From: Octopus sinensis
Taxonomy: Eukaryota
Direction: 5' to 3'
NCBI RefSeq assembly: GCF_006345805.1
Contig: NC_042998.1
Coordinates: 21,328,001-21,392,000, forward strand
DNA: 64,000 bases
Part shown: positions 12,659 through 60,364 of the stretch, piece by piece
How positions within the stretch are numbered: position 1 is the first letter of the stretch
Layout: each line of letters begins with the position of its first letter
Made by a program: the position numbers and the translations under genes
The notes under the pieces: model-generated
Seen by the model: only the letters and a program-made list of their open reading frames with translations
Databases searched by the model: none
Told to the model about the DNA's origin: nothing

Positions 12659-13107
12659 ATGACTCAAAAACCGAAGAACCGAAAGATGAACCACCAGGGT
12701 ACTGTGAAAACTCTGGAAATGACACTGCTTTCGATAATCATTTGGCACTTGAACATCCTGAACAACCTGAATATCCACCACCACCGGCATATACACCACG
12801 ACCTGAACATCCACAACCTGGATATTTACCACAATCCGGATATCCACTACAAACTGGATATCCACCACAATTCGGATATCCACTACAAATCGGATATCCA
12901 CCACAAATTGGATATCCACCACAACCTGGATATCTAGCACAACCTAGATATCCCCCACAACCCGGGCATCCCCCACAACCCGGATACCTGTTACAGCCAC
13001 CACTACCTCTGCAGCAACGACTACAACAACCACAACAACCAAGAGCATCAGCACCACCACCACCACCACCACCACAACAACAACAACAACAACAACAGTC
13101 TGTTATT
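12659..13107 (+). CDS. Gene A exon 2: Pro/Gln-rich N-terminus with 10 GYPPQx hexapeptide units, poly-P/poly-Q and PPxY motifs (CD225/dispanin family protein)
   Basis: ttttacAG acceptor (phase 1), open frame DSKTEEPKDEPPGY...QQSVI, GTAAGC donor at 13108; exon and both flanking introns align with gene B exon 2. Confidence 0.85.
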
Positions 13108-13462
13108 GTAAGCAAATATTTTTTCGTTTCATTTTACGTCTTCACTATTCTTCAAGCATTTATCCTGAACAGAGATCTTATCTGTAGCAAGTTTTAGTCA
13201 TCAAAAGGTGAATATTCTAGGAAATCATCTTTAAGCGATTTTAGCCAGTCATATCATTATATGGAGCAGAATAAATGATTTAGTTTGGACTTTATTTTAT
13301 CAATCTTTTTTCATTGAATAACCGACAGGTTGTACTAAACTACAATGGTAACAGTAGCAATCGGAGTACCTGGCATAGAAGATATATATACGAATATATA
13401 CGTGTGTGCGTGCACGGATGTATGCTTGTGTATGTGTGTGTGTTTGTATGTATGTATGAATG

Positions 13463-15625
13463 CGTGACAGCACATTCTACACTGGCAAGTCAGTGCTTTT
13501 ATCGATGTGACATTTGGAGTAGTTTGTTCTGAGAGCTTGTTCTTGAGAGCTGCACACCGATGCCTGAGTGGGCCCTTTTAAGTCTACTTTCTGCAGTCAT
13601 TGCCAAATTCTATTCCAATCAGTCGCATCTTTAGTTTTCAAGAGCTGACTGCATTTGTTGTCCTGCCAAATTTTCCTCCTCTGCGCACTCAGATCTTTCT
13701 TAAATTGTGTTGGATCTACGGCTTCGTTCAATTTCAAAGTTCACTGCATTTTCACTGCTTCAATCATTTCTTTTTTACACTCCTTGATATACCAAGCTAG
13801 GCTATTTTCCTCTTCCTTTACACAACCTTCACAACACACTAATCCCCGTCCTCCTTCCTCTTTACATACAATATTTACACAACACTCTTGAGGTATATTC
13901 CCTTGTTCATTAATTTACGTGTTCTCCTGTCCATCTCTTGTAATTCATGCTTCTTCCACGATACAATTTCTGCCCCATATCACATCAAAATAACAGCCTG
14001 CTCTAATCTTATAGCGGCTATTTAGCAACGATTGGAGCACAAGCCGAGTTCTTTTCAAATACTCTTTCTTTAATCTTGTGGTCTTTCATCTTATCTCTTT
14101 CAATGATAACCATGTACTTATATTCTTCCTCTCCGACTTATTTTATAGTTTCACTACTTACCGTCTTGATCCCCTGTCTTTTACTGATTTTTGAGAATCA
14201 TTACACCTCGATCCCAAATTCCAAGCCATATATCTTTGCTAATCATCTGCACAGTTGCCGTCAAACTCTCAATTTAGGTCATTCATAAACCACAGATTAT
14301 TTACTTTTACCCTACCTAGCATGTACCCCCCACACAACACTCTTAAAACACTCGTTAGTGGAGAGGCGAAAGACTGCACCCTTGAAAAATTCCTCTTTTA
14401 ATGTTTAACTCTCTCAGCATATCTCTCCATGCTGTGAGTTCAGTACGCCATGTTGTCATTGAGTTTGGTATTAACTTCAGGATACTGTTTGATATAATGC
14501 CTGTTATCAGTTATTTCATCAGTGGCAAACAAGATATTGGTCGGAAATTTCCAACCGCATTCCCTTTACTTGGGTCCTTCTGGCATAGTACCTATTTCTT
14601 TATTGCCCACAAGGGGCTAAACACAGAGGGGACAAACAAGGACAGACAAAGGGATTAAGTCGATTACATCGACCCCAGTGCGTAACTGGTACTTAATTTA
14701 TCGACCCCGAAAGGATAAAAGGCAAAGTCGACCTTGGCGGAATTTGAACTCAGAACGTAGCGGCAGACGAAATACGGCTACGCATTTCGCCCGGCGTGCT
14801 AACGTTTCTGCCAGCTCGCCGCCTTCTGGCATAGTGTCGTTCTTCCTTTTGTCTGTTTAATCTTTACTTCTCAATTCTCTGTTTATATCACTTTAGTTTA
14901 TGTGCTTTAAATTTCAACCTCTGTTTTAATTCCTCAATCGCAACATTGATTCCCTTCCTATTCATCCTATACTTCCTCTCTAGCTCAACATATTTCTCTT
15001 ACTTAACTTGTTTTCTCTTTTTCCGTTTCAGAATATTAATATTCTTTCTGGTCTCGTTAATAGACTGCGTTATTCTCCTTTTCTACCATGGTTCCTTCAG
15101 GTTATGCTGATATTTACCTTTGGCTTTCAAACCTAACTTCCGGGCTATAAAGATCGAGATTGCATTTATCAGTTTGTTGGTGTCTATAATGTCAGTCCTG
15201 ATATCATCACTGATACCATTTATCTTCCTCACCCATTTATTGAGTTTCTTTCTGTTTACTTTTTAAACGCCAGATAAAAGCTCTGTTCACCAGACGTCCA
15301 AATATCAAAGATTTCATTTAAAATGGATAACTGTTCCTCGGTTCCGTTATCGCTTTCCTGTTCAATAATCTCAGCTTCATGCTCGTTTTCTTCACTTAAC
15401 TCTACGGCCATAATTTCACTATCTGCATTCTCTTCCTCATCCTTCTGTTCACTGCTGGTCTTACTATCCCTAAGCACCTGTTGCTTAATGCTTTCTAGTT
15501 CAACTGGAGATAACCATTCATTCTTTCTGATAGCTCTAGCTGGGTCACACAGATGTTGTTCACTTAATTCAAATATGTCTCTGTCAATCCATACCCTGTG
15601 TATTCCTTTGCTATATCCTGTAGGG
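13463..15625 (-). mobile_element. R4/Dong LINE, internally deleted (paralogous to 52640-55000 and 46082-46945)
   Basis: GYSKGIHRVWIDRDIFELSEQHLCDPARAIRKNEWLS N-terminal domain; RT remnants; AAQEQALRTN...CRMC. Confidence 0.85.
14590..14821 (-). mobile_element. SINE family A, full length, 14-bp TSD
   Basis: TSD ccttctggcatagt at 14576-14589 and 14822-14835; empty site visible in the paralogous LINE near 53676. Confidence 0.9.
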
Positions 15626-15999
15626 GGCAAGGCGGCGAGCTGGCAGAAACGTTAGCATTTCTAGCATGCCCAACATTACCCGGTAACCTTCTTTTCAGAG
15701 CTTCTATCTCCAATTCTGGTAAATAGGATTTGGGCTTGACTGTCACAGGACAGGACTTGCGCAAGCTATTGGGTCATTTTATATCAACTACCTTCACCAC
15801 CTAGGCATTTGAAGACAAATAGAAAAGATAAATAAATAAAAATAATACTAATAAACATTTTAATTTTTTTTTAAATAAAGCAATAAAATAAAAAAGAATT
15901 CTTAATTAAAAAAATAAAAAATAATGAAAAATAAAAAATAATAATAATAATAATACAAAAAATAAATAAAGATTAAAAAAATTAAAATCGTGATAATAA

Positions 16000-16990
16000 T
16001 TATTATTATTTATTGTCATTGCACAACTTCTAACGCTGGACATGTACTACGGTACCAGTTGTTCACTACCAGTAATACCCCTACTTTTTCAAGCAAATTC
16101 ATCGAAAACAGATACATCCACTCACAGAGATTCGATCACTTTTCTTTTGCTACTTACCACTTAGGAGATCTATTGACATGGTTGGTCCTTTTCTGTGACG
16201 TTCTGATATCTAATTGAGCAGTTACAACTTTAGCAGTGGAATAGATAAGGTTATTTAAGGTTGTTAGGTCATTTTCCTAATTTTTTAAGATCTGTCTAAG
16301 CCCAATGTGATGTATCATGATTATTTTCTATGCTGCTTGAGAGTTTTGGTATCGGTTTTCTATTGATCATATCAGTAAACTAAGGCATGCTGCGTTCTTT
16401 CATAATAGCATATTTTACTTCTATGATTTCTTTATTATTCACTTCAAATTCTATCATTTCTATTTTGGTGTTATTGTGGTAGGCCCCGACATGCATCACT
16501 TAATTTATTTGCTTCTATATGTCAGCATACTTCGTTGCCTACTAAATTTCCCCGTGAAGTGAATGTTTTTACAATGAGGTTATTGTTTGGGTTTAGTTGG
16601 GCTGTATAGAAAGCATTCAACACATCTCTATAATCACCTCCAGTCTATTTTATGCACTTTGCTTTAGATGATGCTTTTGGTGGTGTCACTACAGGTCTAG
16701 GATTAGGGTCATCTTGGTTCAGGTTGCCTGGTACTTCGTTTGTTTTTTTTTTGAGAGTTTGTTCCAGCAGCAGACTTTTCGATATCAGTCTGGTTCCACA
16801 TTGAGTATCGCGGTGCTTGATGTCCCAGGCGATGATCGATCCGGCATGAGTTTTGGCTTGTCATTAAAGCATTGACAATAGGAGACGGGTCTGTATGTTC
16901 TGGGTTGACTTTTTGACATGACACCGTTTCCTTGTACTTCCAATGCTGGAACAAATTCTCAAAAAAAAGAAAAGAAACGAACTACCACGC
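16000..16990 (-). mobile_element. R4/Dong LINE 5' fragment (second subfamily), degenerate
   Basis: DYRDVLNAFYTAQLNPNNN and DLTTLNNLIYSTAKVV match the N-terminal region of the element at 37975-42170. Confidence 0.65.
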
Positions 16991-17137
16991 AACCTAAACC
17001 AAGATGACCCTAATCCTAGACATGTAGTGACACCACCAAAAGCATCTAATAGAGCAGTACAACTTTATCAGTGGAATATATATTCGTCGTAGATCGAAAA
17101 TCACCTCTATTTTTCTTGGTACCTGTTTCCGGGCATA

Positions 17138-17354
17138 ACTCTTTTACTCTCTTTACTTTTTTACTTGTTTCAGTCATTTGACTGCGGCCATGCTGGAGCA
17201 CCGCCTTTAGTCGAGCAAATCGACCCCGGGACTTATTCTGTGTAAGCCCAGTACTTATTCTATCAGTCTCTTTTGCCGAACCGCTAAGTGACGGGGACGT
17301 AAACACACCAGCATCGGTTGTCAAGCAATGCTAGGGGGACAAAGACAGACACAG

Positions 17355-17403
<49 letters not shown>

Positions 17404-17568
17404 TACGACAGGCTTCTTTCAGTTTCCGTCTACCAAATCCACTCACAGGGCATTGGTTGGCCCGGGGCTATAGCAGAAGACACTTGCCAAAGATGCCACG
17501 CAGTGGGACTGAACCCGGAACCATGTGGCTGGTTAGCAAGCTACTTACCACACAGCCACTCCTGCGCC
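17138..17568 (-). mobile_element. SINE family B
   Basis: Reverse complement of 11694-12122. Confidence 0.9.
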
Positions 17569-18067
17569 ATAACTGCTTAGAGATCTTTTAAACTGAGTGA
17601 CTAATTTGAACCTTTGCATATTCGTTTGTGGGGAATCGCTTTCTTTTTGTTTGGTATGCCATCCTCCTGATACATGTTTTTCTTTTATTTTCTGTATGTT
17701 TTGTGTTGGCATTATTTATGTTGCTTGTAAATACTAGGATGAATGGAGAGTTGCATGTACTTACTGCGTAATTAGTGTATTTTTACCAGGGTTCTTGGTG
17801 TTGGTTTCGTCGTCTTGCGTGTCTCGTTGAGATATCACGCATTTAAGAAAGAAAACTATACAGTGCGTAACAAAACTCTTTCCGATTGTTTTCATTCCTC
17901 TGCTTTCCCATAGTTGTATCTCGAAGTTTTCCTTCCATTGCACCAACATTACTGGATTAAGTTTGTTTTGTGGAGAGATCTTCTTAGAGTACGTCCATGT
18001 TGCGCTCATCATCGCCATATGCATCACTGGATAATTATGTTAATTTTTTGATTTCTTCTCTTTTCAG

Positions 18068-18151
18068 ACACAAAACCAAGAACTAGAATACTTTACATTT
18101 AAGTTGACCGCAGCAATTCTTGTCACCATTTTCTGTTGTAAACATCTCTAA
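18068..18151 (+). pseudogene. Truncated relic of original exon 3 of gene A (pseudo-exon / alternative acceptor)
   Basis: ttttcAG then TQNQELEYFTFKLTAAILVTIFCCKHL*; KLTAAILVTIFC is identical to gene B exon 3, and the upstream intron matches gene B's acceptor region. Confidence 0.8.
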
Positions 18152-18188: not shown

Positions 18189-18299
18189 ATACAATACGAG
18201 CAACCACGATACTTTGTATGGAGTATGGTTAAAGCAGTTCTCGTCACCTTTTTCTGCTTTGCTCCAACAGGCATTGCAGCTATTTTTTATGCATCTAAA
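18189..18299 (+). CDS. Gene A exon 3: first half of CD225 domain
   Basis: ttttcAG...GTAAGT, 111 nt, phase 0/0: IQYEQPRYFVWSMVKAVLVTFFCFAPTGIAAIFYASK (P-x-Y-x-x-W-S...FC...P.G..AI CD225 pattern). Confidence 0.88.
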
Positions 18300-18520: not shown

Positions 18521-18557
18521 TACGTACACATAAATACACATGAATATATGTGAGTAT

Positions 18558-18760
18558 TATTTCTTTATTTACCACAAGGGGCTAAACATAGAGGGGACAA
18601 ACAAGGTCAGACAAAGGAATTAAGCCGATTACATCGACCTCAGTGCGTAACTGGTATTTATCTAATCGACCCCGAAATGATGAAAGGCAAAGTCGACCTC
18701 GGCGGAATTTGAACTCAGAACGTAACGGCAGACGAAATACCGCTAAGCATTTCGCCCGTG
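18558..18760 (-). mobile_element. SINE family A
   Basis: Family A core. Confidence 0.85.
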
Positions 18761-19330: not shown

Positions 19331-19935
19331 AAATGTAACTAATTCTCTCAGTTATGGGTTTTGTTGCTGGTGGGAGGTTGCCAAGTTCCTGTCATTCAAT
19401 AGCAACACTTACGTAACGTATGTGATATCAATAACGGCCACTTGTTCGATATTTGTGTTGGCGTCAGAACTGGCCAGCCAGTGTCTTTAACTATTTTTGA
19501 CGATCTAGTGTGCTGGTATGAGTATTTTATGCAGTGTTTAGTGTAATCAGATCAGCTGACGTACAATCACCTACACCATACACCCAAAAAGACAGTTGTT
19601 TAGCTGCTCCTATCTGAGTTATGACTACAGCTTGTTTTTCAGTGGAGCAGTGCATTCAACGGTCGACTATTTCCAAAGCGGTGGCAGTATGTGTTGCGAC
19701 CTGGTCTAGTGCTCTGAGTGATACTGATGGAAGTGTTTGTCCCTCAGAATGATTAAGTTGAGGCAAACAGTCAAGTCCTGCTATTAATATAAGACATACA
19801 CTTATTGCATTGACAAATTTTAACAACAACAGTTAGATATTTTTGAGCCAAGTTCAACATCAAATCATATGCAGGAGAACTGATCTATGATGTTTTAGGC
19901 ATTTTGATTACATTATCCAGTGTGATACTATATAA

Positions 19936-21078
19936 TACCTATTTCTTTACTACCCACAAGGGGATAAACACAGACAGGACGAGCAAGGACAAACGGATTA
20001 AGTTGATTATATCGACACCAGTGCGTAACTGGTACTTATTTAACCGACCCCGAAAGGATGAAAGGCAAAGTAGACCTCGGCGAAATTTGAACTGAGAACG
20101 TAGCGGCAGATGAAATACCTATTTCTTTACTACCCACTTGGGGCTAAACACAGAGGGGACGAACAAGGACAGACAGACAGATTAAGTCGATTACATCGAC
20201 CCCAGTGCGTAACTGATACTTATTTAACCGACCCCGAAAGGATGAAAGGCAAAGTGGACCTCGGTGGAGTTTGAACTCAGAACGTAGCGGTAGACGAAAT
20301 ACCTATTTCTTTACTACCCACTTGGGGCTAAACACAGAGGGGACGAACAAGGACAGACAGACAGATTAAGTCGATTATATCGACCCCAGTGCGTAACTGA
20401 TACTTATTTAACCGACCCCGAAAGGATGAAAGGCAAAGTCAACCAGCGGAATTTGAACTCAGAACGTAGCGGCAGACGAAATACCTACTTCTTTACTACC
20501 CACTTGGGGCTAAAAACAGAGAGAACGAGCAAGGATAAACGGTTTAAGTTGATTATATCGACACCAGTGCGTAACTGGTACTTATTTAACCGACCCCGAA
20601 AGGATGAAAGGCAAAGTCGACCTCGGCGGAATTTGAACTCTGAACGTAGCGGCAGACGAAATACCTATTTCTTTACTACCCACTTGGGGCTAAACACAGA
20701 GGGGACGAACAAGGACAGACAGACAGATTAAGTCGATTACATCGACCCCAGTGCGTAACTGGTACTTATTTAACAGACCCCGAAAGGATGAAAGGCAAAG
20801 TGGACCTCGGTGGAGTTTGAACTCAGAACGTAGCGGTAGACGAAATACCTATTTCTTTACTACCCACTTGGGGTTAAACAGAGGGGACGAACAAGGACAG
20901 ACAGACAGATTAAGTCGATTATATCGACCCCAGTGCGTAACTGGTACTTATTTAACCGACTCCGAAAGGATGAAAGGCAAAGTCAACCTCGGCAGAATTT
21001 GAACTCAGAACGTAGCGGCAGACGAAATGCCGGGAAGCATTTCGCCCGGCGTGCTAACGTTTCTGCCAGCTCGCCGCT
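19936..21078 (-). repeat. Tandem array of 6 SINE-A units (~182 bp), one full head; trimer higher-order structure
   Basis: Units start at ~19936, 20115, 20298, 20480, 20660, 20843; identical junction gaaatag|gtatttcgtc on the minus strand. Confidence 0.92.
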
Positions 21079-21689
21079 TTATATTATCCAATACCAATTT
21101 TAAAGAGAGCATTTTGTGATTTGAGGAATTTGGCTGCTCCTTCAAACAGGTTGAGTTGTATCCTAGTGGCTGTGGCATAGGCTGTTTGAGGTTCCCTCAT
21201 GGAGTCGATATGCATTTAGTTGATGGAGATTGCAGAGGAGAAGCAAAATTAAAGGTCCTAAACAAGATCAAACGAACATTATGATTGTAATAGTGAAAAT
21301 GTTGCTTATACAAAATGTTACCTGTAACACTTGTTTGTTCCATTATGTCTAACAATAACGTTTCAAGTATTTTAACCACAACAGTGTTGTTCCTCTGCCG
21401 ACATACCGTGTCATTATAAATCAGGTTTCTATTAATCCAATGTACATATAATAACTCTAACACTTATATAGCATTTGACTAAAAAACAGCATGGCATTTA
21501 ACAGTTTTGATTAAATTTCTTTGTGTTGTAAGAATAATGGTTATGAAACTGATAAATAATATCGGTTCACCATCACCACAACCAAACCAACTCTACAAAA
21601 ATATTGGTGAAATTTGTGGTCCCCTCCATTCACTCTTTTATTAAGAAGAAATTATATTGTTCATTCATATAATTCCTTTTTATTGCTGT

Positions 21690-22115: not shown

Positions 22116-22238
22116 TCATTTACTCACACTCCAAAAATTCTGGCCTTGTACTAAAGTTAGAAACCAATATATTTGCTGTTGTTGAGTTTTATTAGCGTTC
22201 TTTATATATAAACTAATTCTTTTCTTTCTATCTTCTAG

Positions 22239-22388
22239 GCAAACGTAATGGCTGATATTTGGAATATAGAAGCTGCAAAGGAAGCAAACGCAGCTGCACG
22301 TCTATTAATCAAAGTATCGTTTGTTGTTGGTATTCTCGTCATGAGTTTTGGACTCATCCTACCTTTAATAAATGCCGTCACGAAATAA
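22239..22388 (+). CDS. Gene A exon 4 (terminal): second half of CD225 domain + TM helix
   Basis: tcttctAG acceptor; ANVMADIWNIEAAKEANAAARLLIKVSFVVGILVMSFGLILPLINAVTK*. Confidence 0.88.
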   Translation, partial: ANVMADIWNIEAAKEANAAARLLIKVSFVVGILVMSFGLILPLINAVTK

Positions 22389-22717
22389 CTTTCACATAAC
22401 GTTATAAACTTTAGGAGATTCATATTGAATGAAAGGTCTTCTTTTTTATTAGAGGTATTTCTCAACATAACTTCATTGATTGTTAACATGAAATACTCTC
22501 AGCCAAAAATGTTTAAATATATTGAGAACTTCAGTCAATAAATGGTATATTTCATACTAAGTGATACAATTTTAAATAATGAATAATGATATATACAGTT
22601 CGATAAACTCTATGGCTTCAGTTTGATAGCTACAACCCATAAAGTAGTAAAACTACGAGAGTATAAAGACTCTTGTACCATCCCTCCTGTTTCCCACGAA
22701 AGCAATGGGTGATGTTA

Positions 22718-32623: not shown

Positions 32624-32633
32624 ATGGAAGACA
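32624..32633 (+). CDS. Gene B exon 1 coding part (ATG GAA GAC A)
   Basis: agcATGG Kozak context, GTAAGT donor at 32634; phase 1 matches the exon 2 acceptor, giving MEDNNKTTEE. Confidence 0.65.
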
Positions 32634-35576: not shown

Positions 35577-35809
35577 CGTTTCTTTACTACCCACAAGGGG
35601 CTAAACACAGAGAGGACAAACAAGGACAGACAAAGGGATTAAGTCGATTACATCGACCCCAGTGCGTAACTGGTACTTATTTAATCGACCCCGAAAGGAT
35701 GAAAGGCAAAGTCGACCTCGGCGGAATTTGAACTCAGAACGTAGCGGCAGACGAAATACAGCTACGCGTTTCGCCCGGCGTGCTATCGGTTCTGCCAGCT
35801 CGCTGCCCT
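35577..35809 (-). mobile_element. SINE family A, full length, 17-bp TSD
   Basis: TSD tattaaagtcaccaatc at 35560-35576 and 35810-35826; empty site in gene A near 12555. Confidence 0.9.
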
Positions 35810-35913: not shown

Positions 35914-36269
35914 ATAACAAAACAACTGAGGAACCGGAAAATGATCCACCAGAATACTCTGAAAAACCTGGAAACACACCTGCTTTTGCGAATCCTTTGG
36001 CTTCTGAACATCCCGGAGAATCTGGATATCCACCGCCACCAGCATATGAACCACCACCCGGATATGAACCACAACCCGGATATCCACCACAATTCGGATT
36101 TCCACCACCACACGGATATCCACCACAACCCGGATATCCACCACAATTTGGATATCCACCACAACCTGGATATCAACCACAACTCGGATATGCACCACAA
36201 CCCGGATACCCGTCACAACCACCAATTGTGCTACAAGCACTGAATCAACAACACCAAAACCCTGTTATT
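35914..36269 (+). CDS. Gene B exon 2: Pro-rich GYPPQx repeat region with PPxY motifs
   Basis: ttttacAG acceptor; NKTTEEPENDPPEY...QNPVI; GTAAGC donor at 36270. Confidence 0.87.
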
Positions 36270-37974: not shown

Positions 37975-38917
37975 TTCAGTAGTATTAGTTTTATAGCGTG
38001 CTTTCACTTCACTACCGAGCACAGCTCTGTGTGCCTTGGGTATGTGCTGTGATTTGTTGTGATGCTCTGATGGTTATTGTATGGAAAGTGTTCAGCGTAG
38101 GATGTGTGCAGTGCCTAGTAGTGCAATTTTCTGTATGTTATATGTGTTTGTAAGTCCTGGTGTTTTTGTTATGTATTTGTCTGAATATTTTTTTATCATG
38201 CCTAATGCACCTACTATGATAGGAATTGTTTCTGTTTTTAGATTCCATATTCTGGTTACCTCTATTTCTAGGTCTTTGTATTTTGAAAGTTTCTCCATTT
38301 CTTTTAGAGAAACGTTGTCATCTGCCGGTATTGATACATCAATTAGAAAGCATTTTTTGTCTTCATGATCTCTGACAACTATATCTGGTCTGTTGGCCTT
38401 AATTTCTCTATCTGTGTGTATCGGCATATCCCAGAGTATGGTTGCTTTCTCGTTTTCTGTGACCTTTTCTGGTGTGTGTCTATACCATCTTTTTTCTGTT
38501 GTTATTCCACAATGTTGGCATAGCTTCCAGTGTATGTAGGTTCCAACTCTGTCATGTCTGTGAATATAGTCCTTCTTAACCAGGACTGGGCAGCCAGAGA
38601 TAATATGATTTATTGTTTTTTGTCCATCTCCACATATTCTGCAGTTACTTGTTATATTTCTTTTCATTACATGTTTTTGGTAATTTCTGGTGGGGAGGCT
38701 TTGGTCCTGTGCTGCAATTAAAAATCCCTCTGTCTCTGCTTTGAGTCCTGAGCTTCTCAACCATTGCTGGGATTTTTCTTTGTCTATTTCTTTTGCATTT
38801 AGTTTAGTCCAGTATTTACCATGAAGGGGCTTTTCTTGCCATCGTTTTATCATGGTTCGTTGGTGTTCTATTTTTAGTTTGGATTTCATTTATTTTATAG
38901 CTTTTGTTGTTTCTTCC

Positions 38918-38948
<31 letters not shown>

Positions 38949-41900
38949 CTTCTTCTTCTTCTTCTTCTTCTTCTTCTTCTTCTTCTTCTTCTTCTTCTTC
39001 TTCTTCTTCTTCTTCTTCTTCTTCTTCATCATATTTATTAGGTGGTATGATTTCTTGTTTGTATTTGTCAGCTTCCTTAAATACTGAGAACAGTTTTTTT
39101 GTTTTGCTCGTGTTTTACCGCTATTTGTATCAGTTTTCCTTCCTTCTGAAGTAGGTATTTTTGCAGTCCTATGGTGGTTATTTTATAGTAGTTTTCCAGC
39201 TGTATAAGGCCTCTACCACCTTCTATGCGTTGTATATATAGTCTTTCTATGTCAGATTTTGGGTGATGTATCCTAGATCGTGTCATTATTTTTCTTGTTT
39301 TCCTATCAATTTTGATCAGTTCATTTAGAGTCCAGTTAAGGATATTGTAGCTGTAACTTATAACTGGGACAGCTAAAGTGTTAATACCTATTATCTTGTT
39401 TTTAGCATTGAGCTCTGTTTTTAGTATTGATCTAACTCGTCTATAATATTCTTTTTTTATTTTCTCTTTCATTTGTGTGTGTTGTGTCTTATCTAGTTCA
39501 TGGATTCCTAAGTATTTGTAAGTTTGGTTTTGGTCTAATTCTTTTATTTCATTGGTTTTATCTAGTGTGATGTTGCTACTCTTAACTAGTTTTCCTCTTT
39601 TCATGGTTACTTTGGTGCATTTTTCTAATCCAAATTTCATATCTATTTCTTTGGTAAATCCATGAACTGTCTTTAATAGTGTTTCCAGCTGTTTGTCATT
39701 TGCAGCGTATAGTTTTAGGTCATCCATATATAAAAGGTGGCTGATCGTTTTGTCGTAACATTTATATCCGCATCCAGTTCTATTTAGCATATCAGATAGA
39801 GGCGACAGTGCCAAGCAGAAAAGGAGTGGAGAGAGCGTGCCTCCCTGGAATATTCCTCTTCTAATGGGGATGGCTTTGGTTTTTATGAGTCCCTCTTTTG
39901 TTTGGAGCTGTAGCACTGTTTGCCATTTATTCATAGAGTGCCCTATGACTTTTATAATTGTTGGTGCTACTTTGTTAATGGCTAGTGTTTCGAGGATCCA
40001 TGTGTGGGGGATGCTAGCAAACGCCTTTTTGTAGTCGATCCAGGCCATACTGAGGCCTTTCTTCTTTCTGTGGCTGTCTTCAGTTATGGCTTTATTAATC
40101 ATTAGTTGATCTTTACAGCCATATGAGCCTTTGCGGCATCCTTTCTGCTCTTCTGGAAACAGGTTGTTTTCGTCCAGGTGCTTGTTCAACCTTTGCGATA
40201 TCACTGCAGTAAATGCCTTGTACATTGTAGGGAGACAGGTTATTTGTCTGTAGTTTTCTGGTTTTGCTGTCTCATTTGATTTGGGAATTAAGATGGTTTT
40301 CCCCTTCGTGAGCCATTCAGGCATTGTCTCTGGCTCTGCTAGTATGTTGTTAAAATTTTCAGCCAGCTTTTTGTGCATTCCTGTTAGATATTTCAACCAG
40401 AAGTTGGGGATCTTGTCATGCCCAGGTGCCTTCCAGTTGCTTAGTCTTTGCAGTGCCTGGGTGACCTCTTCAGTTGTTATGGGGGTCCAAAGTTGCTCAG
40501 ATGCTGAGTTTGTTGTTTTAATACTCCTTTTTTTTGGTTGTTCGTTCGCCGACCATACTTCTCTCCAGAATTCTTCCACTTCTTCTGCCGTTGGTGCTGC
40601 AGTGATTTCTATTTTATTTTTGCCAAGTTCTTGGTAGAACCTTTGGGGGTTGGAGTTGAACTTTTTGTTTTGTTCAAAGAAGCGCTGGCGTTTCTCGTAT
40701 CGGCGGATCCTTTGTGCTTTGGCAAGGATATCTTGTTTCAGCTTTTCTTTTATCGCAGGTAAATCTTTTTCTGTGATGTTATATTTGCGGAGTATTTTTG
40801 TTTTCTTTTTGTTGCTCAGTAGCGTTGATTGTCTACTGATTTCATTAAGAATCGACAGATTTTTTCTTATTTTTTGTATTTTGTTTTGGATGTTATTTAC
40901 CCACAGGGTTTGTTTGGGTGGTGGTACACCTGTTTGGATGGGTTTGAGTGAGTATCCAGCTTCTTTTGTGGCTGCAGTGGCTGCTGCGTATACTAAGTCA
41001 TTTAGCTTAGTGATATCGCTTTTTGTTTCAGTGGCTATTAGTTCCGCGACGGCTAGGTTTATGCTGTTTATAATTGGTGTTGTTGTTTCGTCTATTTTGA
41101 TTTTTGGGAGGTATGGTCGGTGGTCCATTTTGAGCTCTGTGGTTTTCAGTTCTTTGATTATTTTACTTTTTATATTATCATAATCATTAGGCTCCCCTTC
41201 GTTGTTTCCAGGTTTTAGATTTGTGTCGCTTTCTTTCTTATTTATATGTTTGTTTGCCGTGTTTTGGCTTGCTGTTTGTCGTGTATTATTATGCATCCTT
41301 ATGGTCTGGGTTTGTTGTTTTTTGTTTACATCGTGTTTGTTGGGAATGTTACGTTTGTCTTCGTGTTTTACTGTTTCAGTGTTTATATTATTGGGCATTG
41401 TTGCGTGGCTTCTATCCACATTTTCCTGGTGTATTTTTTCTTTTAGATGTTCTATTTCTATTTCTGATATTTGTTTTTGCGTTGAGAATGTATCTTCGTA
41501 CGTTAGCTAGTTTATTAGGGTTCATTGCTGTATCCAAGTCTATATTTATGTTATTTTCCTTCCATATTTTATATGTATGTGTTGTTGTGTTTTCATTTTT
41601 TGGGTAGAGCACTGCTGTGAAGTATGCGTGTAGGATAGAAATGTATTCCTCACGTGTCCATTTATGCCTTTTGGGTTTTATTTGCGGGACATGAGGATCA
41701 ACGTCCGGCCCATTATTTTGACGGTCGTCATTTTCGTAGGGTACCGGTCCGTTCATTTCTGTTGTCACATTGTTTTGCACGTGTAGTTTTTCGTACATTT
41801 TGTGTTGTAAGTTTAAAATACGTACCTCCCGATTGTTATTCTTGGGTTGAATAATATCGGTGGTATTTAATTTCTTCGTAGTTCCTTTGTACATGGTGTT

Positions 41901-42170
41901 TGGGGTCGGAGATGATCTGATGTTGATGGATCGTAATGTTCCACGCATGTTTACATGTGTTGTGTTAGAGGTGGAGATGATATCGAGTCAAAATACATCA
42001 TTTCGTTTCGAAAATAGTAATAAATTTCAATGAGTATTACTTACTCGGATACAGTCTAATCCTTTGTTAGTAAATCTTTGGCTCCATACGATGTCCTTGT
42101 TTTCGATGTTTATGGATAGATTTCGGAGCTCTGCTGTATCGTTCTTACATCTTAAACGTCCCCCGGTGTC
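37975..42170 (-). mobile_element. Near full-length R4/Dong LINE (RT + restriction-like endonuclease), inactivated
   Basis: ORFs 41412-41948, 39077-41419 (WIDYKKAF, GIFQG, YMDD) and 38092-38889 (CRIC..HIISGC, RHD, NRPD, IDVSIP, K..KY); frameshifts; (TAA)n at both ends. Confidence 0.95.
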
Positions 42171-50324: not shown

Positions 50325-52640
50325 TAGTTGTTTACTTTTCCTTCATTCCCATTGATCCAGTTGCCATCAGAGTATGCTATGTCGATTATCATAGGTATTC
50401 TTGCTTTTTTATTCACCACAACAATGTCCGGTTTCCGATATCTGCTCAGATGATCACACTGAATCATTACATCCCATAGGATTTTTGCAGTTCTCATTTC
50501 CGGTGACTCCTTTGCAGTTTGCTCATGCCACATCTTCGCTCTGTGCCACAGAGCTCCCAATGGATCATTCTTGCCACATAGTCATGGCGTCGTTTGTATT
50601 CGCTTGTGCCAATTTCTTGCATTCGCTAACAATGTGCCATACCGTTTCAACCCTCTCACCACACATTCTGCATTTGTTGCAATCGGTAGTGTTGTCTATT
50701 CTGCACTTCATATAGTTGGTTCTTAATGGTTGTTTCTGAGCTGCGTGTATGCATGCTTCTCTCTCTATCTTCAGTTCATAGCCATCGGCCCTCTGCGTCT
50801 GTATTGGCGTCCACATCACTTGCAAACTAACCGTACGCTTTGTTTCCTTCCATGCTCTTTCTTTTTTTCTTCTTTTGTTCATTTCTAGTATAAATTTTTC
50901 TTCATTTACATAATTATCGGTGTTGATTACGCCAGCATTCTTCGAGTGTTTCAATAGTGGTTCCACGGCATTTTTTATATACCACCCTAGGCTGTTTTCC
51001 TCTGCTTCGATACAGTCTTGGTAATTGATTAAAGCACTCCCACCCTTTCTTCTGGAGAAGTACAGCCTATTGGTGTCACTTTTAGGGTGGGAAGGTCCGT
51101 GTACCGCTAACATTTTCTGGTTTTGATATTAATTTTCTTCATTTCTCTCTTTTGCCATTTTATAATTCCTGCTCCATAACGAAGTGATGCTATCGCCCAC
51201 GTATTAGCTGCTTGGATTTTATTCCAGCTAGTGTATTTTGAACGCAACAACAACCTCAGACGTCGGAAATGTTCCATCCTCAGTTGAGCTTTCATTTTCT
51301 TTTCCATTATCTCATTGAACTCTATTACACCAAGATATTTGTATCCATCTGTTTCAGTTTCTTTAATCAAGTCTCTGATCGGAAATTATCCATGCTAGGG
51401 ACTGTACTTTTCCGCTTTTTAGATAGATTATTTCGCACTTCTTGAATCTAAATTCCATTCTAATATCAATATTAATTGGGTGGACCGTGTTCACCAAGGA
51501 ACTCACCTGTGTTTCATCTTTGTCATTCAATTTCAAATCATCCATGAAGAAGAGGTAGTTGACTGATTGAGATTTTTCTTGTAGTTGGTGCCCCAGATTC
51601 AATTTCCTTATTATCAAGGTCAGGGATATCATGCAGAAAGCAAAAAGCAATGGAGATAGGCTATCACCTGGAAAATCCCTCTTCTGATACCCAGAGTGCC
51701 CAAGGTTTTTTCCGTCAGATGTCGGTTCAGTTTTCCATCCCACCATACACGTTACATTCCTTGCAATTCCAAACAGATGTAAGCACTCAATGATCCACGA
51801 ATTTGGAATCATATCATAAGCTTTGCGATAATAAGTCCAGGCCATTCCCAGATTAGTTCTCCTTCGTTTACAATCTTGCATTACCGTTTTGTCTATAAGT
51901 AGTTGATCTTCGAAACCTCTGCATTTCCTTCGACTGCCTTTTTAGTCTGGTGATAATATATCGTATATAATTTATACAATTCTTCTGCAATTCTTCTTGA
52001 CAGTAATTTTCACATTAATAAGAGGCAGGAAATTGGTCTGTAATTGTCTGCAGCATTTCTCATTGATGCATCCTTCAGGCACAAAAACGTTCGTCCTTTC
52101 GTCAACTAGCCCGGGATTTCTTCTCAATTGATCAATGCATTAAATTTCTCTGTGATCAATTTTTGGCAATTAATGGACTTTTTATCCCAAATCTCTGTCC
52201 ACCTGCTTTCCAATTGCTTATCGTTTTACTCATATTTCTGATACTCTTTACTATGGAGTGGATAGCCTTCTAGCTGGGGATAAGAAGCTGTTTGCTTCAA
52301 GCTGCAGAGCCATTCAGCTGTAATATTACGTTGTTCTTGTTTGATTATATCTTACCCCAGAAAAGTCGACTTTCATCAGTATCACGGATTCATCTTTCAC
52401 GTTTTTTATCCCCACTTGTCTCTTGGTAAAATATTTTTTCTTCAGTTCTAACCAATTTGTTTTTCTGGTATTGCTTAATCCGTTGTTCAAACCTAGTTAG
52501 CTTTGCTTTTTATGCATCTTTGCGCTGTTTCAGTTCTTCAATTACAACATTCAGACCTTTTCTATCTACACCATACTGCTTCCTAAATTTTTCGAATTTC
52601 CATTCATTCTAAGTTCACCAGTTCTTTTTCTGACAACTTC
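50325..52640 (-). mobile_element. R4/Dong LINE, degenerate RT + RLE
   Basis: [57 protein letters not shown]. Confidence 0.88.
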
Positions 52641-55000
52641 TGATATTACACTGTTCATCTGATCTCTGGTCTTTTTAAAATTCTGTTGGATCTACGCCTT
52701 CATTGACTCTTAAGGTTCCCTGCATTTTCACTGTTTCAATCATTTTTTCTTTACTCCCCTTGACAGACCAAGCCAGGCTATTCTCCTCTTCCCTTACACA
52801 ACCTTCACAACACACCAATACCTGTCCTTTTCTCTTTATATACAATCTTGACACATCACTCTTCGGGTGTTGATACTTGTTGATACGTGTTCTCCGGTCC
52901 ATCTCTTGTAATTCATGCTTCTTCCACAATACAATTCCTGCCTCATATCTCATCAAAGCAACCGCCTACGTGTTGATTGCTCTAATCTTATAGCGGCCAT
53001 TTAGATTCGATTGGATCACAAGCCGAGTTCTCTTCAAATACTCTTTCCTGTACAGTTCTTTCATCTTCTGTTCATTCATCTTATCTCTTTCAGTGATACC
53101 CATGTATTTATATTCTTCCTTTCCGATTTCCTTTATAGTTTCACTACTTTCCAGCTTGATCCATGGCTTTTACTGATTTTTCCCCTTTAGAAATTACCAC
53201 ACTACATTTCTCGATCCCAAATTCCGAGCCAATATCTTTGCTAATCATCTGTACAATAGCCGCCAAACTCACAATTATTTTCAGTCTTAGCAAATAGCTT
53301 TATGTCATCCATAAACCACAGGTTGTTTACTTTCACCCTGCCTATCATGTACAACACAAGCATCATTCTTAAAACGCTCGTTTGTGGCAGTATGCAGACA
53401 ACAAATAAGAGAGGCGATAGACTGTCCCCTTGAAAGATTCCCCTTGTGATATTTACCTCTCCCAACTTGTCTCCCCATGCTGTGAGTTCAGTTCGCCACG
53501 TTGCCATTGAGCTTCCTGCTCTAACGTTTACACCCTAATTGTCCCGCTGGTAGCAGGTCGATATCATCTGGATACATGCGGATGCTGTTTGATATGATGC
53601 CCATCATCAGTTTCCATATCAGTGGCAAACAAGAAATTGGTCGGAAATTTCCAACCGCATTCCCTTTATTTGGGTCCTTCTGGCATAGTATCGTTCTTCC
53701 AATCGTCATACAGGCCGCCACTTGAATCTCACTACTCAGTATTTCGTCCATCTGTTTTGCAAATTCTCCTGAGCAGAATTGTCAAGTTTTTTAGCCAAAA
53801 GCCCTGAACCACATCTGGCCCAGGCACGTCCCATCTCTGAATTCTCCTGCACTGATCTCTACTCATATCGGTTATTCTCAAATCCTCCTGCTGATACTCC
53901 CCACTCTCATTGAGTATCTTTAACCACTCTGCTTCAGTTTCGGGTTGTTACTCCTGAGACCATATGTTTAATCAGAATCTCTTGCTTTCTTCAGCATCAG
54001 GAAAGAGTTCTTCACCTTTTTCTTTCCCATCAAGTTCCTGATAGACTCCTGCTCAATTCTTTGTTCATAACCCTTAGTTTATGTGCTTTTGCTTACAGCC
54101 TCTGTTTTAATTCCTCAATCAATCATAATATGCATTCCTTTCTCTTCACCCTACACTTCCTCTCTAGCTCAACATATTTCTCTCGCTGAACATCATTTCT
54201 CTTTTTCCGTTCCATAATATTAATATGCTTTCTGGTCTCGTTAATAGATTGCGTTATTCTCCTTTTCCACCATAGTACCTTTGGGTTAGCGTGACATTTA
54301 CCTTTGGCTTTCAAACCTAACTTCCGGGCTATAAAGATCGAGATTGCATTTATCAGTTTGTTGGTGTCTATAATGTCAGTCCTGATATCATCAGTGATAC
54401 CATTTATCTTCCTCACCCATTTATTGAGTTTCTTTCTGTTTACTTTTTAAACGCCAGATAAAAGCTCTGTTCACCAGAAGTCCAAATATCAAAGATTTCA
54501 TTTAAAATGGATAACTGTTCCTCGGTTCCGTTATCGCTTTCCTGTCCAATAATCTCAGCTTCATGCTCGTTTTCTTCACTTAACTCTACAGCCATAATTT
54601 CACTATCTGCATTCTCTTCCTCATCCTTCTGTTCACTGCTGGTCTTACTATCCCTAAGGACCTGTTGCTTAATGCTTTCTAGTTCAGCTGGAGATAACCA
54701 TTCATTCTTTCTGATGGCTCTAGCTGGGTCACGCAGATTTTATTCACTTAATTCAAATAGGCCTCTGTCGCCCCATGCCCTGCGCATTCCTTTCCTATAT
54801 CCCCTAGCAGATATTTCATTATCATTTCTCGGATTACCCAGAAAGTATCACTCCATTAAAACCACATTCATTTCTTTCGTCCACCTTCTTTTAGCAGTTG
54901 CTTGATGACGACTGAACCCACGCTGCTCAATCGTGGGGTCCCTGCCGGGCAAGAGACCGCGAGATGTTCCAGCCTCATTCACGCCGATTTTATTTGATAT
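52640..55000 (-). mobile_element. R4/Dong LINE 5' two-thirds (paralogous to 13463-15625)
   Basis: [43 protein letters not shown]. Confidence 0.88.
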
Positions 55001-55019
55001 TTCAGCACTCATGATGAGG

Positions 55020-56761
<1,742 letters not shown>

Positions 56762-56806
56762 AATCCCATGAGAATTATATTATGTTTTTGATTTCTTTCT
56801 TTTCAG

Positions 56807-56917
56807 ATACCAAACCAGCAATCACAATATGTTGACGATAAGCTGACTGCAGCAATTCTTGTCACAATTTTCTGCTTTTTTCCGACAGGTATTCCTGCTA
56901 TTATATTTGCATATCAA
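56807..56917 (+). CDS. Gene B exon 3: first half of CD225 domain
   Basis: ttttcAG...GTAAGT, 111 nt: IPNQQSQYVDDKLTAAILVTIFCFFPTGIPAIIFAYQ. Confidence 0.88.
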
Positions 56918-57147
56918 GTAAGTAAAATGCAAACATTTCTTGCAAGAAATTCTATTTATTTTCATACATTTTATCCGGTCGTGGCCGTATGGTAAGAAGT
57001 TTGCTTCTCAACTACATGGTTCCGGGTTCAGTTCTACCGCACCTGGGACAGGTGTTTTCTGCAATAGCCACGTGATGATCAAAGACTGGTGAGTGTATTA
57101 AGCAGATAGAAACAGAAAACCCCGTCACACACACATACAAACACACG

Positions 57148-57234
<87 letters not shown>

Positions 57235-57244
57235 TTGAATATAT

Positions 57245-57690
57245 GTTTTGTGTGGCTTCCCTTAACTTGAATATTTGTTTCAATGCGCCAGAGAAGAGAT
57301 GCGTGCAAATCCTTTCATCACATTCACAGTATTTGAGGCCATTCTCTGTGGCTGCTTTCCCCCAACTCTTGAAACTGCGTGGATTCTTCTGACAAACTTT
57401 TATCTTTAGTTCTGTCCACATTTGCTCGATGATGTTCAAGTCAGGGCTCAGTGCTGACTAAACTCTTGATACGGTAACTCTTTCATCGGCCAGACTCTGT
57501 TGTGTTGTACATGATCTGTTACAAGAAATTCCGTCATGCTGAAAAATCTCACCTTCATCCAAGTCTGGTAACAAATTGTCCTTCAGCAACTATACTTATT
57601 TGGTACTATTCAAGTTACCATCAATTTTAACCAACGTTCTTGAAACAACACTTTTCATGTATCCCCAAAACATCAGACTTCTACCCGCAA
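57245..57690 (-). mobile_element. Tc1/mariner transposase fragment
   Basis: SLMFWGYM...IDGNLNS..Y..LLKDNL...FQHDG...SPDLNIIEQMWTELK. Confidence 0.8.
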
Positions 57691-57699
57691 ACTAGTTAT

Positions 57700-58620
57700 T
57701 TCAGTTGGGGAAGTGAAGGAAATCAGCAACAAATGGGCAACTGGATATCCGCTGGGAGTCCAAGGCAACTGGATCAAACGATTTGGTGAATATCATGCAC
57801 GAATAGCTGCGCAAATCAACACCTTGTTAAATGCCGACCAAGGAACACCAGAGTGGTTGACATTAGGTAGGACAGTGCCGTGCTTGAAAAACATGGACAA
57901 AGGCAATACAGTAGACAATTACAGGCCGATATTCTGTTTGCCACTTATGTGGAAACTATTGACTGGAATACTCGCAGAGTCAATGTACGGACATCAAGAA
58001 AAAAGAGCAGAAGGGTTGCAAGCGTAAGTGCAAAGGTACGAAGGATCAACTTCTGATAGACAAAACTGTACTTAGAGATTTCAAGAGGAGGAAAACTAAC
58101 TTAGCCATGTCATGGATCGATTATCGTAAGGCGTACGATATGATCCCACTTCCAAACCATCTTTATGTCTCTCATCGAGCAAGCTATCACTGTTACTTTC
58201 CTGTAGTTTATAAGATATTTCACCTCTGTTTTCTGCTATCAGATTACTTTTATCAGTAGGAACAGTATTTTCATCGCTGCCTCTGCTGCTGTTTTGCAAT
58301 ACCCGTCTTTTGATAGCTTCGAGCTCTACTTCCTCACATAATCTCTGTACCGTGAGTTGAAACAATTCCCTGGTATACATCGCAACTCCACAAGGAGTTT
58401 TTCTCTCCTGTCATTTCGATATACAACACACTTCGGCATGTGTCTCTCAGCATTTGTTATATCAGCGATGCCATGCAATTCGCTTCATTACATGTATCCA
58501 AGTCTCTTAGGTATGAGGTTTTCTGCTGGCGGGAAGTTACCAGTTTCCTGGCATTCGACAGCAACAGTGGTAGGACGTGTTGGATGACAATAACGATAAC
58601 TTGTCTGACATTTGTGGTAG
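57700..58620. mobile_element. Two R4/Dong fragments in opposite orientation (57700-58160 +, 58160-58620 -)
   Basis: [38 protein letters not shown] (+); QRLCEEVELEAIKRR (-). Confidence 0.75.
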
Positions 58621-59427
58621 CGTCAGGAATGGGCTGCCTGGAAATTTAACAGTTTATGGTTGTCTGGTGTGCAGTTTTTATGCAGTGTTTGATGTAACCT
58701 AGTCATCTGACTTACAATATCTTACACCATACACCCAAAAGTTGTTCAGCTGCTTTTGTCTCGGTTATGTGTATAGGTTGTTTTTTTCTGCGGAGCAATA
58801 CGTTCAACAGTTGAATATGTCCAACGAGGAGGCAGTGTGTGTTGTGACCTTTTTTCGTGCCCTTGGTGATCTTGTTGGATGGGTTTGTCTCCTCAGAATA
58901 ATTAGGTAATGGCAAACATTCAAGTCCTGCTATTATTGTAAGGCATGAACTTATTGCATCAAAATATTTTAACAGCAACAATAAAGTATTTTCGAGCTGA
59001 GTTCAACATTAGATCATATCCAGATAAACCCATCTATGATATTTCAGGCATTTTGTTTCACTGTATTAAGATTACATAATACAATGGGATATTATCCAAT
59101 ATCATTTTTTAAAGAGATCATATTTTTACTTGAGGAATTTAACTACTATTTCAAACAGGTTAATTTGCTTCCTACTGGTTGTGACAGAAACTGCTGAAGG
59201 TTCCCTCGTGGACATCATAAGGATTTCGTTCTAGGGATTGCAGAGGAAAAGCAAAACAAAAGGTCCGAAACAAGATCAAACCAACAGCATGATTACGATG
59301 ATCCTTATATGAAGGGTCACTTGTAATACTTGTTTGCTCCATGAAGTCTAACAATAATCGTTTCAACTATTTCAACCACATCAATCTTGTTTTACTCATC
59401 TTTAATATCTCTGCCAACTTACCATTA

Positions 59428-59660
59428 TATTTTTCTTTACTACCCACAAGGGGCTAAACACAGAGAGGACAAATAAGGACAGAAAAAGGGATTAAGTCGA
59501 TTACATCGACCCCAGTGCGTCACTGGTACTTAATTTATCGATCCCGAAAGAATGAAAAGCAAAGTCGACTTCGGCGGAATTTGAACTCACAACATAACGA
59601 CAGACGAAATACGGCTACGCATTTCGCCCGGCGTGCTATCGTTTCAGCCAGCTCGACGTC
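59428..59660 (-). mobile_element. SINE family A
   Basis: Family A core. Confidence 0.88.
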
Positions 59661-60202
59661 TTAATCTAGTCTACATATAATAGCTCTAACACCTCAGTAG
59701 CCATCAACAAAGAAAAAGCATGACTTTTCGCAGCTTTGATGAAATATCTACTTCTATAAGAGCAGCGGTTATGAAACTGACTAATAATATCAGTTCACTA
59801 CCACCACAACTACACCCGCCCTGCAAAAATATCGGTGGAATTTGTCGTCAAGGTAACACCCCCACCATGCGTTCCTTTATTAAGAAGAAACAATATTGTT
59901 CATCCTTATAATTCTATATAATTGCTGTTGTTAAGGCGATAAGCTGGCAGAATCGATTGCACGTCGAGAAAAATATTTAGCGGTATTTTGAACGTCTTTA
60001 AATTCTGAGTTCAAATCTCTCCAGGTCCACTTTGTCTTTCATCCTTTAGGGATAAATACAATATGTACTTGTTGAGTGCTGGGCTCGATGTAATTCACCT
60101 ACCCACTCACCCCAAATTGCTTAGAAACCAACATATTTGTTGTCGTTGGGTCTTATTAGCGTTCTTTAAATGTAAACTAACTCTTGTCTTTCTGTCTTCT
60201 AG

Positions 60203-60364
60203 GCAAACTCAATGGCCCGAATGGGAAATATAGCAGATGCAAACGAAGCAAACATTAAGGCAAGACATTTCATCAGAATATCAGTAATTTTTGGTTTTAT
60301 AATTACGCTTGGAACCATCCTACCCCTTATTATAGTATTTTCGGTTGTTAGCGGTATTAATTGA
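60203..60364 (+). CDS. Gene B exon 4 (terminal): second half of CD225 domain + TM helix
   Basis: tcttctAG acceptor; ANSMARMGNIADANEANIKARHFIRISVIFGFIITLGTILPLIIVFSVVSGIN*. Confidence 0.88.
   Translation, partial: ANSMARMGNIADANEANIKARHFIRISVIFGFIITLGTILPLIIVFSVVSGIN

Follow-up and report, generated by a model that had tools for sequence, protein, structure and literature searches.

The 64,000-nt stretch of Octopus sinensis DNA analysed here, called the window below, corresponds to ca. 21,328,001–21,392,000 of chromosome CM016860.1 (assembly GCA_006345805.1; exact matches) and carries two four-exon genes of the CD225/dispanin family, A and B, for both of which complete models on the same strand were obtained by six-frame inspection, tblastn, and the use of database proteins. 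The span 12659–60364 comprises these two separate genes and the intergenic DNA between them. Together with a third paralog, Z, upstream of A, and a fourth, P0003, downstream of B, they probably constitute a same-strand cluster of PRRT1-like dispanins in which a small core of the protein is constrained, the coding sequence as a whole changes at an approximately neutral rate, and the intron sequence flanking the splice sites is conserved. The core consists of F-C-x-x-P-x-G-I-x-A in the first hydrophobic segment and of A-x6-A in the loop that follows it. The A and B proteins would be real products, with open reading frames (ORFs) kept open by selection, and the divergence of the coding sequences would resemble the neutral divergence of bulk intron because most residues outside the core are free to change or are changing adaptively; the introns would look more conserved than the exons because the 60–100 nt beside every internal exon are under purifying selection. 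The initial annotation of the window had described tandem, IFITM-like, cephalopod-specific and positively selected paralogs whose exons diverge faster than their introns; what remains of this is a rapidly evolving cluster of dispanins whose splice flanks are unusually well conserved and whose selection signal is borderline.

Divergence of exons and introns

The contrast noted initially lies at the 3' end of intron 3. The last 82 nt of this intron (plus strand, 22157–22238 in A and 60121–60202 in B) differ, in an ungapped alignment, at 10 positions (87.8% identity), while the first 93 nt of exon 4 (22239–22331 and 60203–60295, respectively) differ at 30 (67.7% identity); the first 31 codons of this exon comprise 16 replacements, three synonymous-only changes, and 12 identical codons. 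All of these counts were reproduced exactly. The difference between the start of exon 4 and the intron tail is nominally significant by Fisher's test (p = 0.002) for a segment that had been picked after inspection.

The neutral divergence of the two genes is better read from the bulk of their introns, in which the collinear BLAST blocks are 73–78% identical, with a weighted mean of 75.2% over 3289 nt, corresponding to a Jukes–Cantor distance of ca. 0.30. The 100–350 nt of intron beside each exon are 82–90% identical between A and B, and the coding sequences are 72% identical overall (exon 2, 77%; exon 3, 69%; exon 4, 63%). Neither the entire coding sequence (p = 0.14) nor the first 93 nt of exon 4 (32% versus 24.8% mismatches, p = 0.11) differs significantly from bulk intron, and these tests are generous to the claim of faster exons, since alignable intron is biased toward conserved sequence. 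It is the 82-nt intron tail that departs from bulk intron, being more conserved (12% versus 24.8% mismatches, p = 0.009). The statement that the exons diverge faster than the introns is therefore upheld for the ca. 60–100 nt of splice-proximal intron and fails for bulk intron, in comparison with which coding divergence is approximately neutral.

The conservation of the intron ends extends over the whole family. The tail of intron 3 is 83–90% identical in every pair of Z, A, B, and P0003, and 76–87% identical to that of P0008, a homolog from O. bimaculoides, while the adjoining exon 4 is only 65–77% identical in the same comparisons; in these five genes, the 60-nt flanks of exons 2–4 show a mean identity of 70–87%, and the exons themselves of 59–69%. 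From these alignments it is concluded that the splice-proximal stretches are likely to be under purifying selection, and that they represent neither a neutral clock nor the product of a recent gene conversion between A and B, because they are conserved in P0003, situated 144 kb away and sharing ca. 36% protein identity with the other paralogs, as well as in O. bimaculoides. Intron ends conserved across paralogs in this way are a poor neutral yardstick for these genes. The tail of intron 3 holds branch-point-like CTAAT/TTAAT motifs (a candidate branch-point region) and a long pyrimidine tract, and the conserved flanks may serve as strong splicing signals for three small exons placed in transposon-filled introns of 3–20 kb. 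Two other identities considered for the tail were rejected: it is not a dispersed repeat, being found at the genes themselves only, and as a structured RNA it gives a weak consensus fold (-8.8 kcal/mol) with essentially no covariation. An Rfam scan of the window, intron tail included, gave no matches.

Selection on the proteins and alternative explanations

In pairwise comparison (NG86, LWL85, and YN00), A and B show 0.33 nonsynonymous (dN) and 0.40 synonymous (dS) substitutions per site, a ratio of 0.83; by exon, dN/dS amounts to 0.78 in exon 2, 1.0–1.1 in exon 3, 0.75–1.06 in exon 4, and 1.0–1.1 in the first 31 codons of the latter. The codon models were fitted to seven sequences, namely Z and B from two species together with A, P0003, and P0008, which represent five effective lineages. 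Because the paralog tree is unresolved, all 15 topologies falling within 3.3 log-likelihood units, the selection tests were carried out on a star tree and on alternative trees. In model M0, dN/dS (omega) is 0.80 for the CD225 domain (p = 0.18–0.20 against omega = 1), 0.85 for exon 4 (p about 0.5), 1.5 for its first 31 codons (p about 0.24), and 0.82 for the N-terminus (not significantly different from 1); for the whole gene it is 0.68, and omega = 1 is rejected (p = 0.005–0.007). The branches leading to A and B do not differ from the remaining ones (0.71 versus 0.84, p = 0.68). About 37% of the sites evolve at omega of ca. 0.2, and no indels are found in exon 3 or in the first 31 codons of exon 4 in the five genes. 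As to the proposed positive selection, the proteins are indeed fast-evolving, with omega of ca. 0.8 in the normally conserved CD225 domain; positive selection itself is not established by pairwise ratios of 0.75–1.1, M0 estimates of 0.68–0.86, and a borderline outcome of the M1a/M2a comparison. A and B thus appear to have diverged at a nearly neutral rate, possibly with some adaptive change, for which exon 4 of B is the best candidate.

By analogy with the rest of the family, the products would act as two-segment membrane proteins, the Pro-rich, PPxY-bearing cytoplasmic N-terminus of which may recruit WW-domain ligases or adaptors, and the CD225 loop of which may modulate vesicle trafficking or fusion. 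Z retains what would be the ancestral loop (GDxxG), and A and B may have diverged in partner specificity after the duplication.

Several observations weigh against this account of a constrained core in an otherwise nearly neutral protein. Model M2a fits better than M1a, with a likelihood-ratio statistic of 5.9–7.7 (p = 0.021–0.052 across three trees and a trimmed alignment), and assigns ca. 35% of the CD225 sites to omega of ca. 2.2, most of them located in the second hydrophobic segment or in the part of the loop bounded by the conserved alanines; judged from the codon alignments, the positive-selection signal of the site models is suggestive at best. Between O. sinensis and O. vulgaris, B differs at 8 of 639 nt (six replacements, two synonymous changes, ratio 0.91), and its exon 4 at 6 of 162 nt (four replacements, two synonymous changes), which is 4.4 times the local rate (p = 0.0026 against a locus-wide mismatch of 0.84%, and p = 0.002 against 16 of 2356 nt in the exon flanks), and real positive selection may be superimposed there on weak constraint. 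In Z the situation is reversed, exons 3 and 4 showing a single difference in 330 nt between the species. A gene conversion from A or Z into exon 4 of O. vulgaris B was considered and rejected, as the derived states (D, V, I, M) fit neither paralog. Moreover, the likelihoods come from a self-written GY94/F3x4 program that was not validated against PAML, the synonymous sites are near saturation on a star-like tree in the codon models, and the splicing function of the conserved flanks is only inferred. Finally, a collinear block of 755 bp in intron 2 (14867–15618 in A, 54049–54802 in B) is 92% identical while its neighbours are ca. 74% identical, evidence that these introns can undergo local homogenisation or parallel transposon insertion; the block itself may have arisen by gene conversion, or through insertion of a transposon in parallel or more recently. 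Its minus strand resembles a fragment of a retrotransposon ORF, and it is absent from Z, P0003, and P0008.

An array under arms-race diversifying selection, i.e., an invertebrate IFITM-like restriction factor or a fast-evolving fusion regulator, would account for omega of 0.8, a very high value for a conserved domain, for the advantage of M2a over M1a (p = 0.02–0.05) with candidate sites in the cytoplasmic loop and the second hydrophobic segment, and for the accelerated exon 4 of B (p = 0.003); tandem expansion is, besides, typical of immune genes, and vertebrate IFITMs evolve adaptively (PMC6907390). This is nevertheless unlikely, as mean omega is never significantly above 1, the A and B branches behave like the others, and the intron-versus-exon argument collapses against bulk intron; A and B also lack the G-D and GxxxG motifs and the 0-layer Arg needed by IFITM3 (PMC7665892, PMC11730294), and IFITMs proper are a vertebrate subfamily, invertebrate dispanins being like DSPC/DSPD (PMC3282796). 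Very doubtful, too, is a broader form, in which the genes would code for lineage-specific, diversifying modulators of fusion or trafficking whose loop and second hydrophobic segment are engaged in conflict (e.g., with viruses or intracellular parasites), an independent analogue of IFITM derived from PRRT1-like ancestors, with splice flanks that might permit exon mixing. That A and/or B are redundant copies on their way to becoming pseudogenes, their high dN/dS reflecting loss of function, agrees with a CD225 omega indistinguishable from 1 and with the 20-kb, LINE-invaded (LINE, long interspersed nuclear element) intron of B, but is quite unlikely given ORFs and splice sites that are all intact after ca. 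25% neutral divergence. The chance of a stop-free ORF under neutral change is 0.011 for A and 0.032 for B (at 0.15 neutral substitutions per site per lineage), i.e., 0.01–0.03 per gene; frameshifts are absent despite the many indels in the flanking introns, ca. 37% of the sites are held at low omega, omega is below 1 gene-wide (p = 0.005), B is intact in O. vulgaris, and an ortholog of A is annotated there.

Gene conversion restricted to introns, with exon-containing tracts removed by selection so that the introns look younger, could explain the patchy intron identity of A and B (68% to 92%, including the 755-bp block) and the shift of the closest pair along the gene, from A–B near exon 2 to Z–B near exons 3 and 4, which suggests a mosaic history. 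It is very unlikely to be the source of the conserved flanks, which are shared with the distant P0003 and with O. bimaculoides and hug the splice sites of every exon instead of forming random tracts. A splice-compatible cassette array, in which read-through transcripts join exons of different paralogs into combinatorial isoforms, would be in keeping with the common strand, identical exon phases, and conserved splice flanks, and with an NCBI model, 'isoform X4' (XP_036367721), that begins with exon 1 of Z and ends with exon 4 of A; as the Z/A junction of this model lies in the repetitive exon 2 without a GT-AG site and looks artefactual, and as each gene has its own exon 1 and start codon, this is highly improbable.

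A cluster of PRRT1-like dispanins with a constrained core and conserved splice flanks remains the probable interpretation. Its genes are already present in public annotation, the family is known in molluscs, and the anomaly dissolves under a proper neutral yardstick. Nothing here supports an antiviral role, and the cluster is a modest curiosity rather than a demonstrated octopus antiviral system. Were the adaptive signal true, this would be an invertebrate dispanin cluster diversifying in the manner of vertebrate IFITMs, and a candidate for cephalopod immunology or neurobiology; as the evidence stands, the main value of the analysis is corrective, with respect to the choice of yardstick, to the misnamed genes, and to a family that is not a cephalopod invention.

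Organisation of the cluster and of genes A and B

The cluster comprises at least four copies, arranged on one strand in the order Z, A, B, P0003. Positions outside the window are given in the coordinates of locus L001, where the L001 position equals the window position p + 34504. Z lies within L001, with exons at 10001–10010, 13567–13871, 16642–16752, and 17311–17529, and P0003 is located ca. 144 kb downstream of B. In each gene, exon 1 contributes 10 nt of coding sequence, exon 2 is Pro-rich, and the CD225 domain is divided over exons 3 and 4; this four-exon plan, together with the exon phases (1, 0, 0), is identical in Z, A, B, P0003, P0008, and the O. vulgaris orthologs. The description of A and B as tandem paralogs with open frames and intact splice sites is correct: they lie on the same strand, use AG acceptors, and read through to the stop codon. 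Orthologs of Z and B are present in O. vulgaris, where an annotated gene also begins precisely where exon 1 of the A ortholog is situated; this ortholog falls in the 28-kb gap separating loci L003 and L002. At least one homolog, P0008, was found in O. bimaculoides. Exon 2 of Z in O. vulgaris (L003 13537–13877) differs from that in O. sinensis (L001 13567–13871) by one 12-residue Pro-rich repeat (PEYPPQPGYTPQ), so the number of N-terminal repeats is evolutionarily labile.

All four paralogs are already NCBI-predicted proteins, under public names that are inconsistent or wrong because of the low-complexity N-termini. Z is XP_029658084, named "PRRT1-like", B is XP_029655251, named "annexin A7-like", and P0003 is XP_036355051, named "atg1-like kinase". 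The C-terminal two-thirds of A correspond to XP_036367721, "annexin A7-like isoform X4", a model that covers L001 10001–56892, from exon 1 of Z through exon 4 of A. It fuses exons 1 and 2 of Z to the middle of exon 2 of A, inside a GYPPQ repeat and with no GT-AG site; because of this position in the repetitive exon 2, the junction is probably an annotation, modelling, or template-switch artefact.

Exon 1 of A is not found within the window; it lies 7.9 kb upstream, at L001 26559–26568 on the plus strand (ATGGAACCCC followed by GTAAGT), in agreement with the start of the O. vulgaris gene model. Exon 2 (12659–13107, plus strand) codes for a Pro/Gly/Tyr/Gln-rich N-terminal region with PPGY and PPPPAY motifs of the PPxY type, and its C-terminal half matches XP_036367721 identically. 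It is entered in phase 1, with an acceptor AG at 12657–12658 and a donor GTAAGC at 13108; a start codon at 12659 was rejected, as the ATG there would not be read in the Pro-rich frame and the position is that of the phase-1 acceptor. Intron 2 is 5.1 kb long. Exon 3 (18189–18299, plus strand) codes for the first hydrophobic segment of CD225 (…VKAVLVTFFCFAPTGIAAIFYASK). It is preceded by a pseudo-exon (18068–18137, plus strand), a tandem duplicate of the exon 3 acceptor and first ca. 70 nt, which is truncated, would shift the frame, and is closer to exon 3 of B and Z than to the functional exon 3 of A. The pseudo-exon retains the ancestral …KLTAAILVTIFC common to B and Z, from which the functional exon has diverged (…SMVKAVLVTFFC); a relative-rate test with B as the reference and the pseudo-exon as a neutral internal control gave 13 versus 9 unique changes in the pseudo-exon and functional exon 3 (p = 0.52), no sign of acceleration. 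Exon 4 (22239–22388, plus strand) codes for the cytoplasmic loop, in which G-D is replaced by W-N, and for the second hydrophobic segment, and ends with the stop codon. Downstream of it lies a conserved block of the 3'-untranslated region (22509–22669, plus strand) containing AATAAA, with counterparts at 60398–60558 in B and at L001 17592–17752 in Z.

Gene B lies entirely in the window, on the plus strand. Its exon 1 (32624–32633; ATGGAAGACA followed by GTAAGT) fits the N-terminus MEDN of XP_029655251 and CAI9718712, and exon 2 (35914–36269) codes for a Pro-rich N-terminal region with PPEY and PPPPAY motifs. Intron 2, of 20.5 kb as compared with 5.1 kb in A, contains ca. 16 kb of extra DNA, including an antisense non-LTR (LTR, long terminal repeat) retrotransposon at 38092–41948 on the minus strand, with RVT_1 and zf-RVT ORFs; its 780-aa ORF matches RVT_1 at 110 bits and also zf-RVT, and a second reverse transcriptase fragment lies antisense in the same intron, at 51363–51881. 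Directly upstream of exon 3 is a trinucleotide microsatellite of ca. 1.6 kb (ATT/TAT/ATC type; 55100–56770), and shorter trinucleotide microsatellites precede exon 3 in Z and P0003. Exon 3 (56807–56917) codes for the first hydrophobic segment (…LTAAILVTIFCFFPTGIPAIIFAYQ), and exon 4 (60203–60364) for the loop, with GNIAD in place of GDxxG, the second hydrophobic segment, and the stop codon.

The DNA of the window is AT-rich and contains arrays of short interspersed nuclear elements (SINEs), microsatellites, and LINE fragments, as is typical of octopus. A SINE-like unit of ca. 182 bp occurs in ca. six tandem copies in intron 3 of A (19934–21080) and as single copies at 18555–18758, 35579–35802, and 59428–59658, in both genes, and is also present near Z. 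Intron 1 of A holds two inverted, degenerate microsatellite arrays, (ACAT/ACATAT)n at ca. 1–3885 and (TATG/TATATG)n at ca. 4820–7333, whose arms are 86–92% identical as reverse complements, differ in GC skew (-0.66 versus +0.43), and are separated by a spacer of ca. 950 bp. The arrays (1–7333) could fold as a large hairpin or cruciform.

Relation to other dispanins and to accelerated gene families

The assignment of A and B to the CD225/dispanin family is sound, as both spliced proteins exceed the gathering cut-off of the Pfam profile PF04505 (42.7 bits for A and 55.1 bits for B against 27.1; profile positions 3–65 of 68), and all homologs found carry PF04505. A profile search of PDB found no CD225 relatives by sequence. 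In all eukaryotic dispanins a conserved splice site within the loop puts the two hydrophobic segments on separate exons (PMC3282796), and in A, B, Z, P0003, and P0008 the phase-0 boundary of exons 3 and 4 falls between …YASK and ANxM…. The dispanin loop is further marked by A-x6-A and G-D motifs, and the first hydrophobic segment by a C-C pair (PMC3282796); G-D and C-C are frequent in the family, but a protein can be given the Pfam assignment without them. All octopus copies retain A-x6-A, with A155, A158, and A162 invariant in the four-paralog alignment and also kept in P0008. G-D is kept in Z and P0008 and replaced by G-N in B and P0003 and by W-N in A, and Z (GDIAG) and P0003 (GNLEG) preserve GxxxG, which B (GNIAD) and A (WNIEA) have lost. 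A single Cys is present in Z, A, B, and P0008, and only P0003 has CC. At the position corresponding to R85 of IFITM3, six residues before the motif G/W in ungapped register, Z, A, B, and P0008 carry Asn, and P0003 carries Tyr; IFITM3 requires G95 and R85 to oligomerise, to bind SNAREs, and to exert restriction (PMC7665892, PMC11730294). Near residue 15, a PPxY motif is invariant (P15, P16, Y18), and PPPPAY is present in A, B, and P0003.

The family is not limited to cephalopods, as had been proposed: a profile search found homologs combining a Pro/Gly/Tyr-rich N-terminus with CD225 in Mercenaria, Bulinus, Lymnaea, a sponge, and a rotifer, mostly named PRRT1 or PRRT1-like at the source, and ten CD225 genes have been reported in Aplysia (PMC9334734). 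The IFITM (DSPA) and DSPB subfamilies originated inside the vertebrates, and their genes contain two coding exons; an additional N-terminal exon is present in DSPC and DSPD1, and the dispanins of invertebrates are similar to DSPC/DSPD (PMC3282796). The label IFITM-like, taken in the narrow sense, does not suit genes with PRRT1-like relatives, with an extra N-terminal exon of the DSPC/DSPD kind, and, in A and B, without G-D/GxxxG and the central Arg. On sequence grounds, the family appears to be a PRRT1-like expansion of lophotrochozoan dispanins rather than a cephalopod invention.

With dispanins of the PRRT1/SynDIG4 type (DSPD) the octopus genes share a long Pro-rich N-terminus on an exon of its own, ahead of a CD225 domain that the loop splice site divides, and NCBI/UniProt name Z, the O. 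bimaculoides homolog, and those of Mercenaria, Bulinus, and Lymnaea PRRT1 or PRRT1-like. They differ in the single Cys of Z, A, and B instead of C-C, in the absence of G-D from A and B, and in forming a tandem, fast-evolving cluster. The putative kinship with PRRT1 is based on source names and exon plan, and the role of an AMPA-receptor auxiliary protein is known for vertebrate PRRT1 only. The likeness to IFITM1–3 (DSPA) comprises the CD225 domain, an N-terminal PPxY motif, gene clustering, and raised protein evolution. However, IFITM1–3 form a vertebrate clade with two coding exons and short N-termini (PMC3282796), whereas the octopus genes have four coding exons and a Pro-rich N-terminus of 110–150 residues on its own exon; moreover, A and B lack GxxxG (G91/G95), Asn (Tyr in P0003) occupies the 0-layer R85 position, and one Cys of the pair is left in Z, A, and B. 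The loop of PRRT2 is the functional surface for SNARE binding and oligomerisation (PMC11730294, PMC7665892). PRRT2 (DSPB) resembles the octopus proteins in the combination of a Pro-rich N-terminus with CD225, but DSPB is reported in tetrapods only, and in place of PRRT2 G305, B has Asp and A has Ala.

A different parallel is provided by the phospholipase A2 (PLA2) genes of snake venoms and by conotoxins, in which exons are accelerated, whole introns and untranslated regions are conserved, and dN is clearly above dS. The octopus cluster shares with these venom families the feature that the non-coding parts of paralogs are more alike than the protein-coding ones; it differs in that the conservation is splice-proximal only, bulk intron has diverged as far as the exons have, and dN/dS equals 1 or falls below it.

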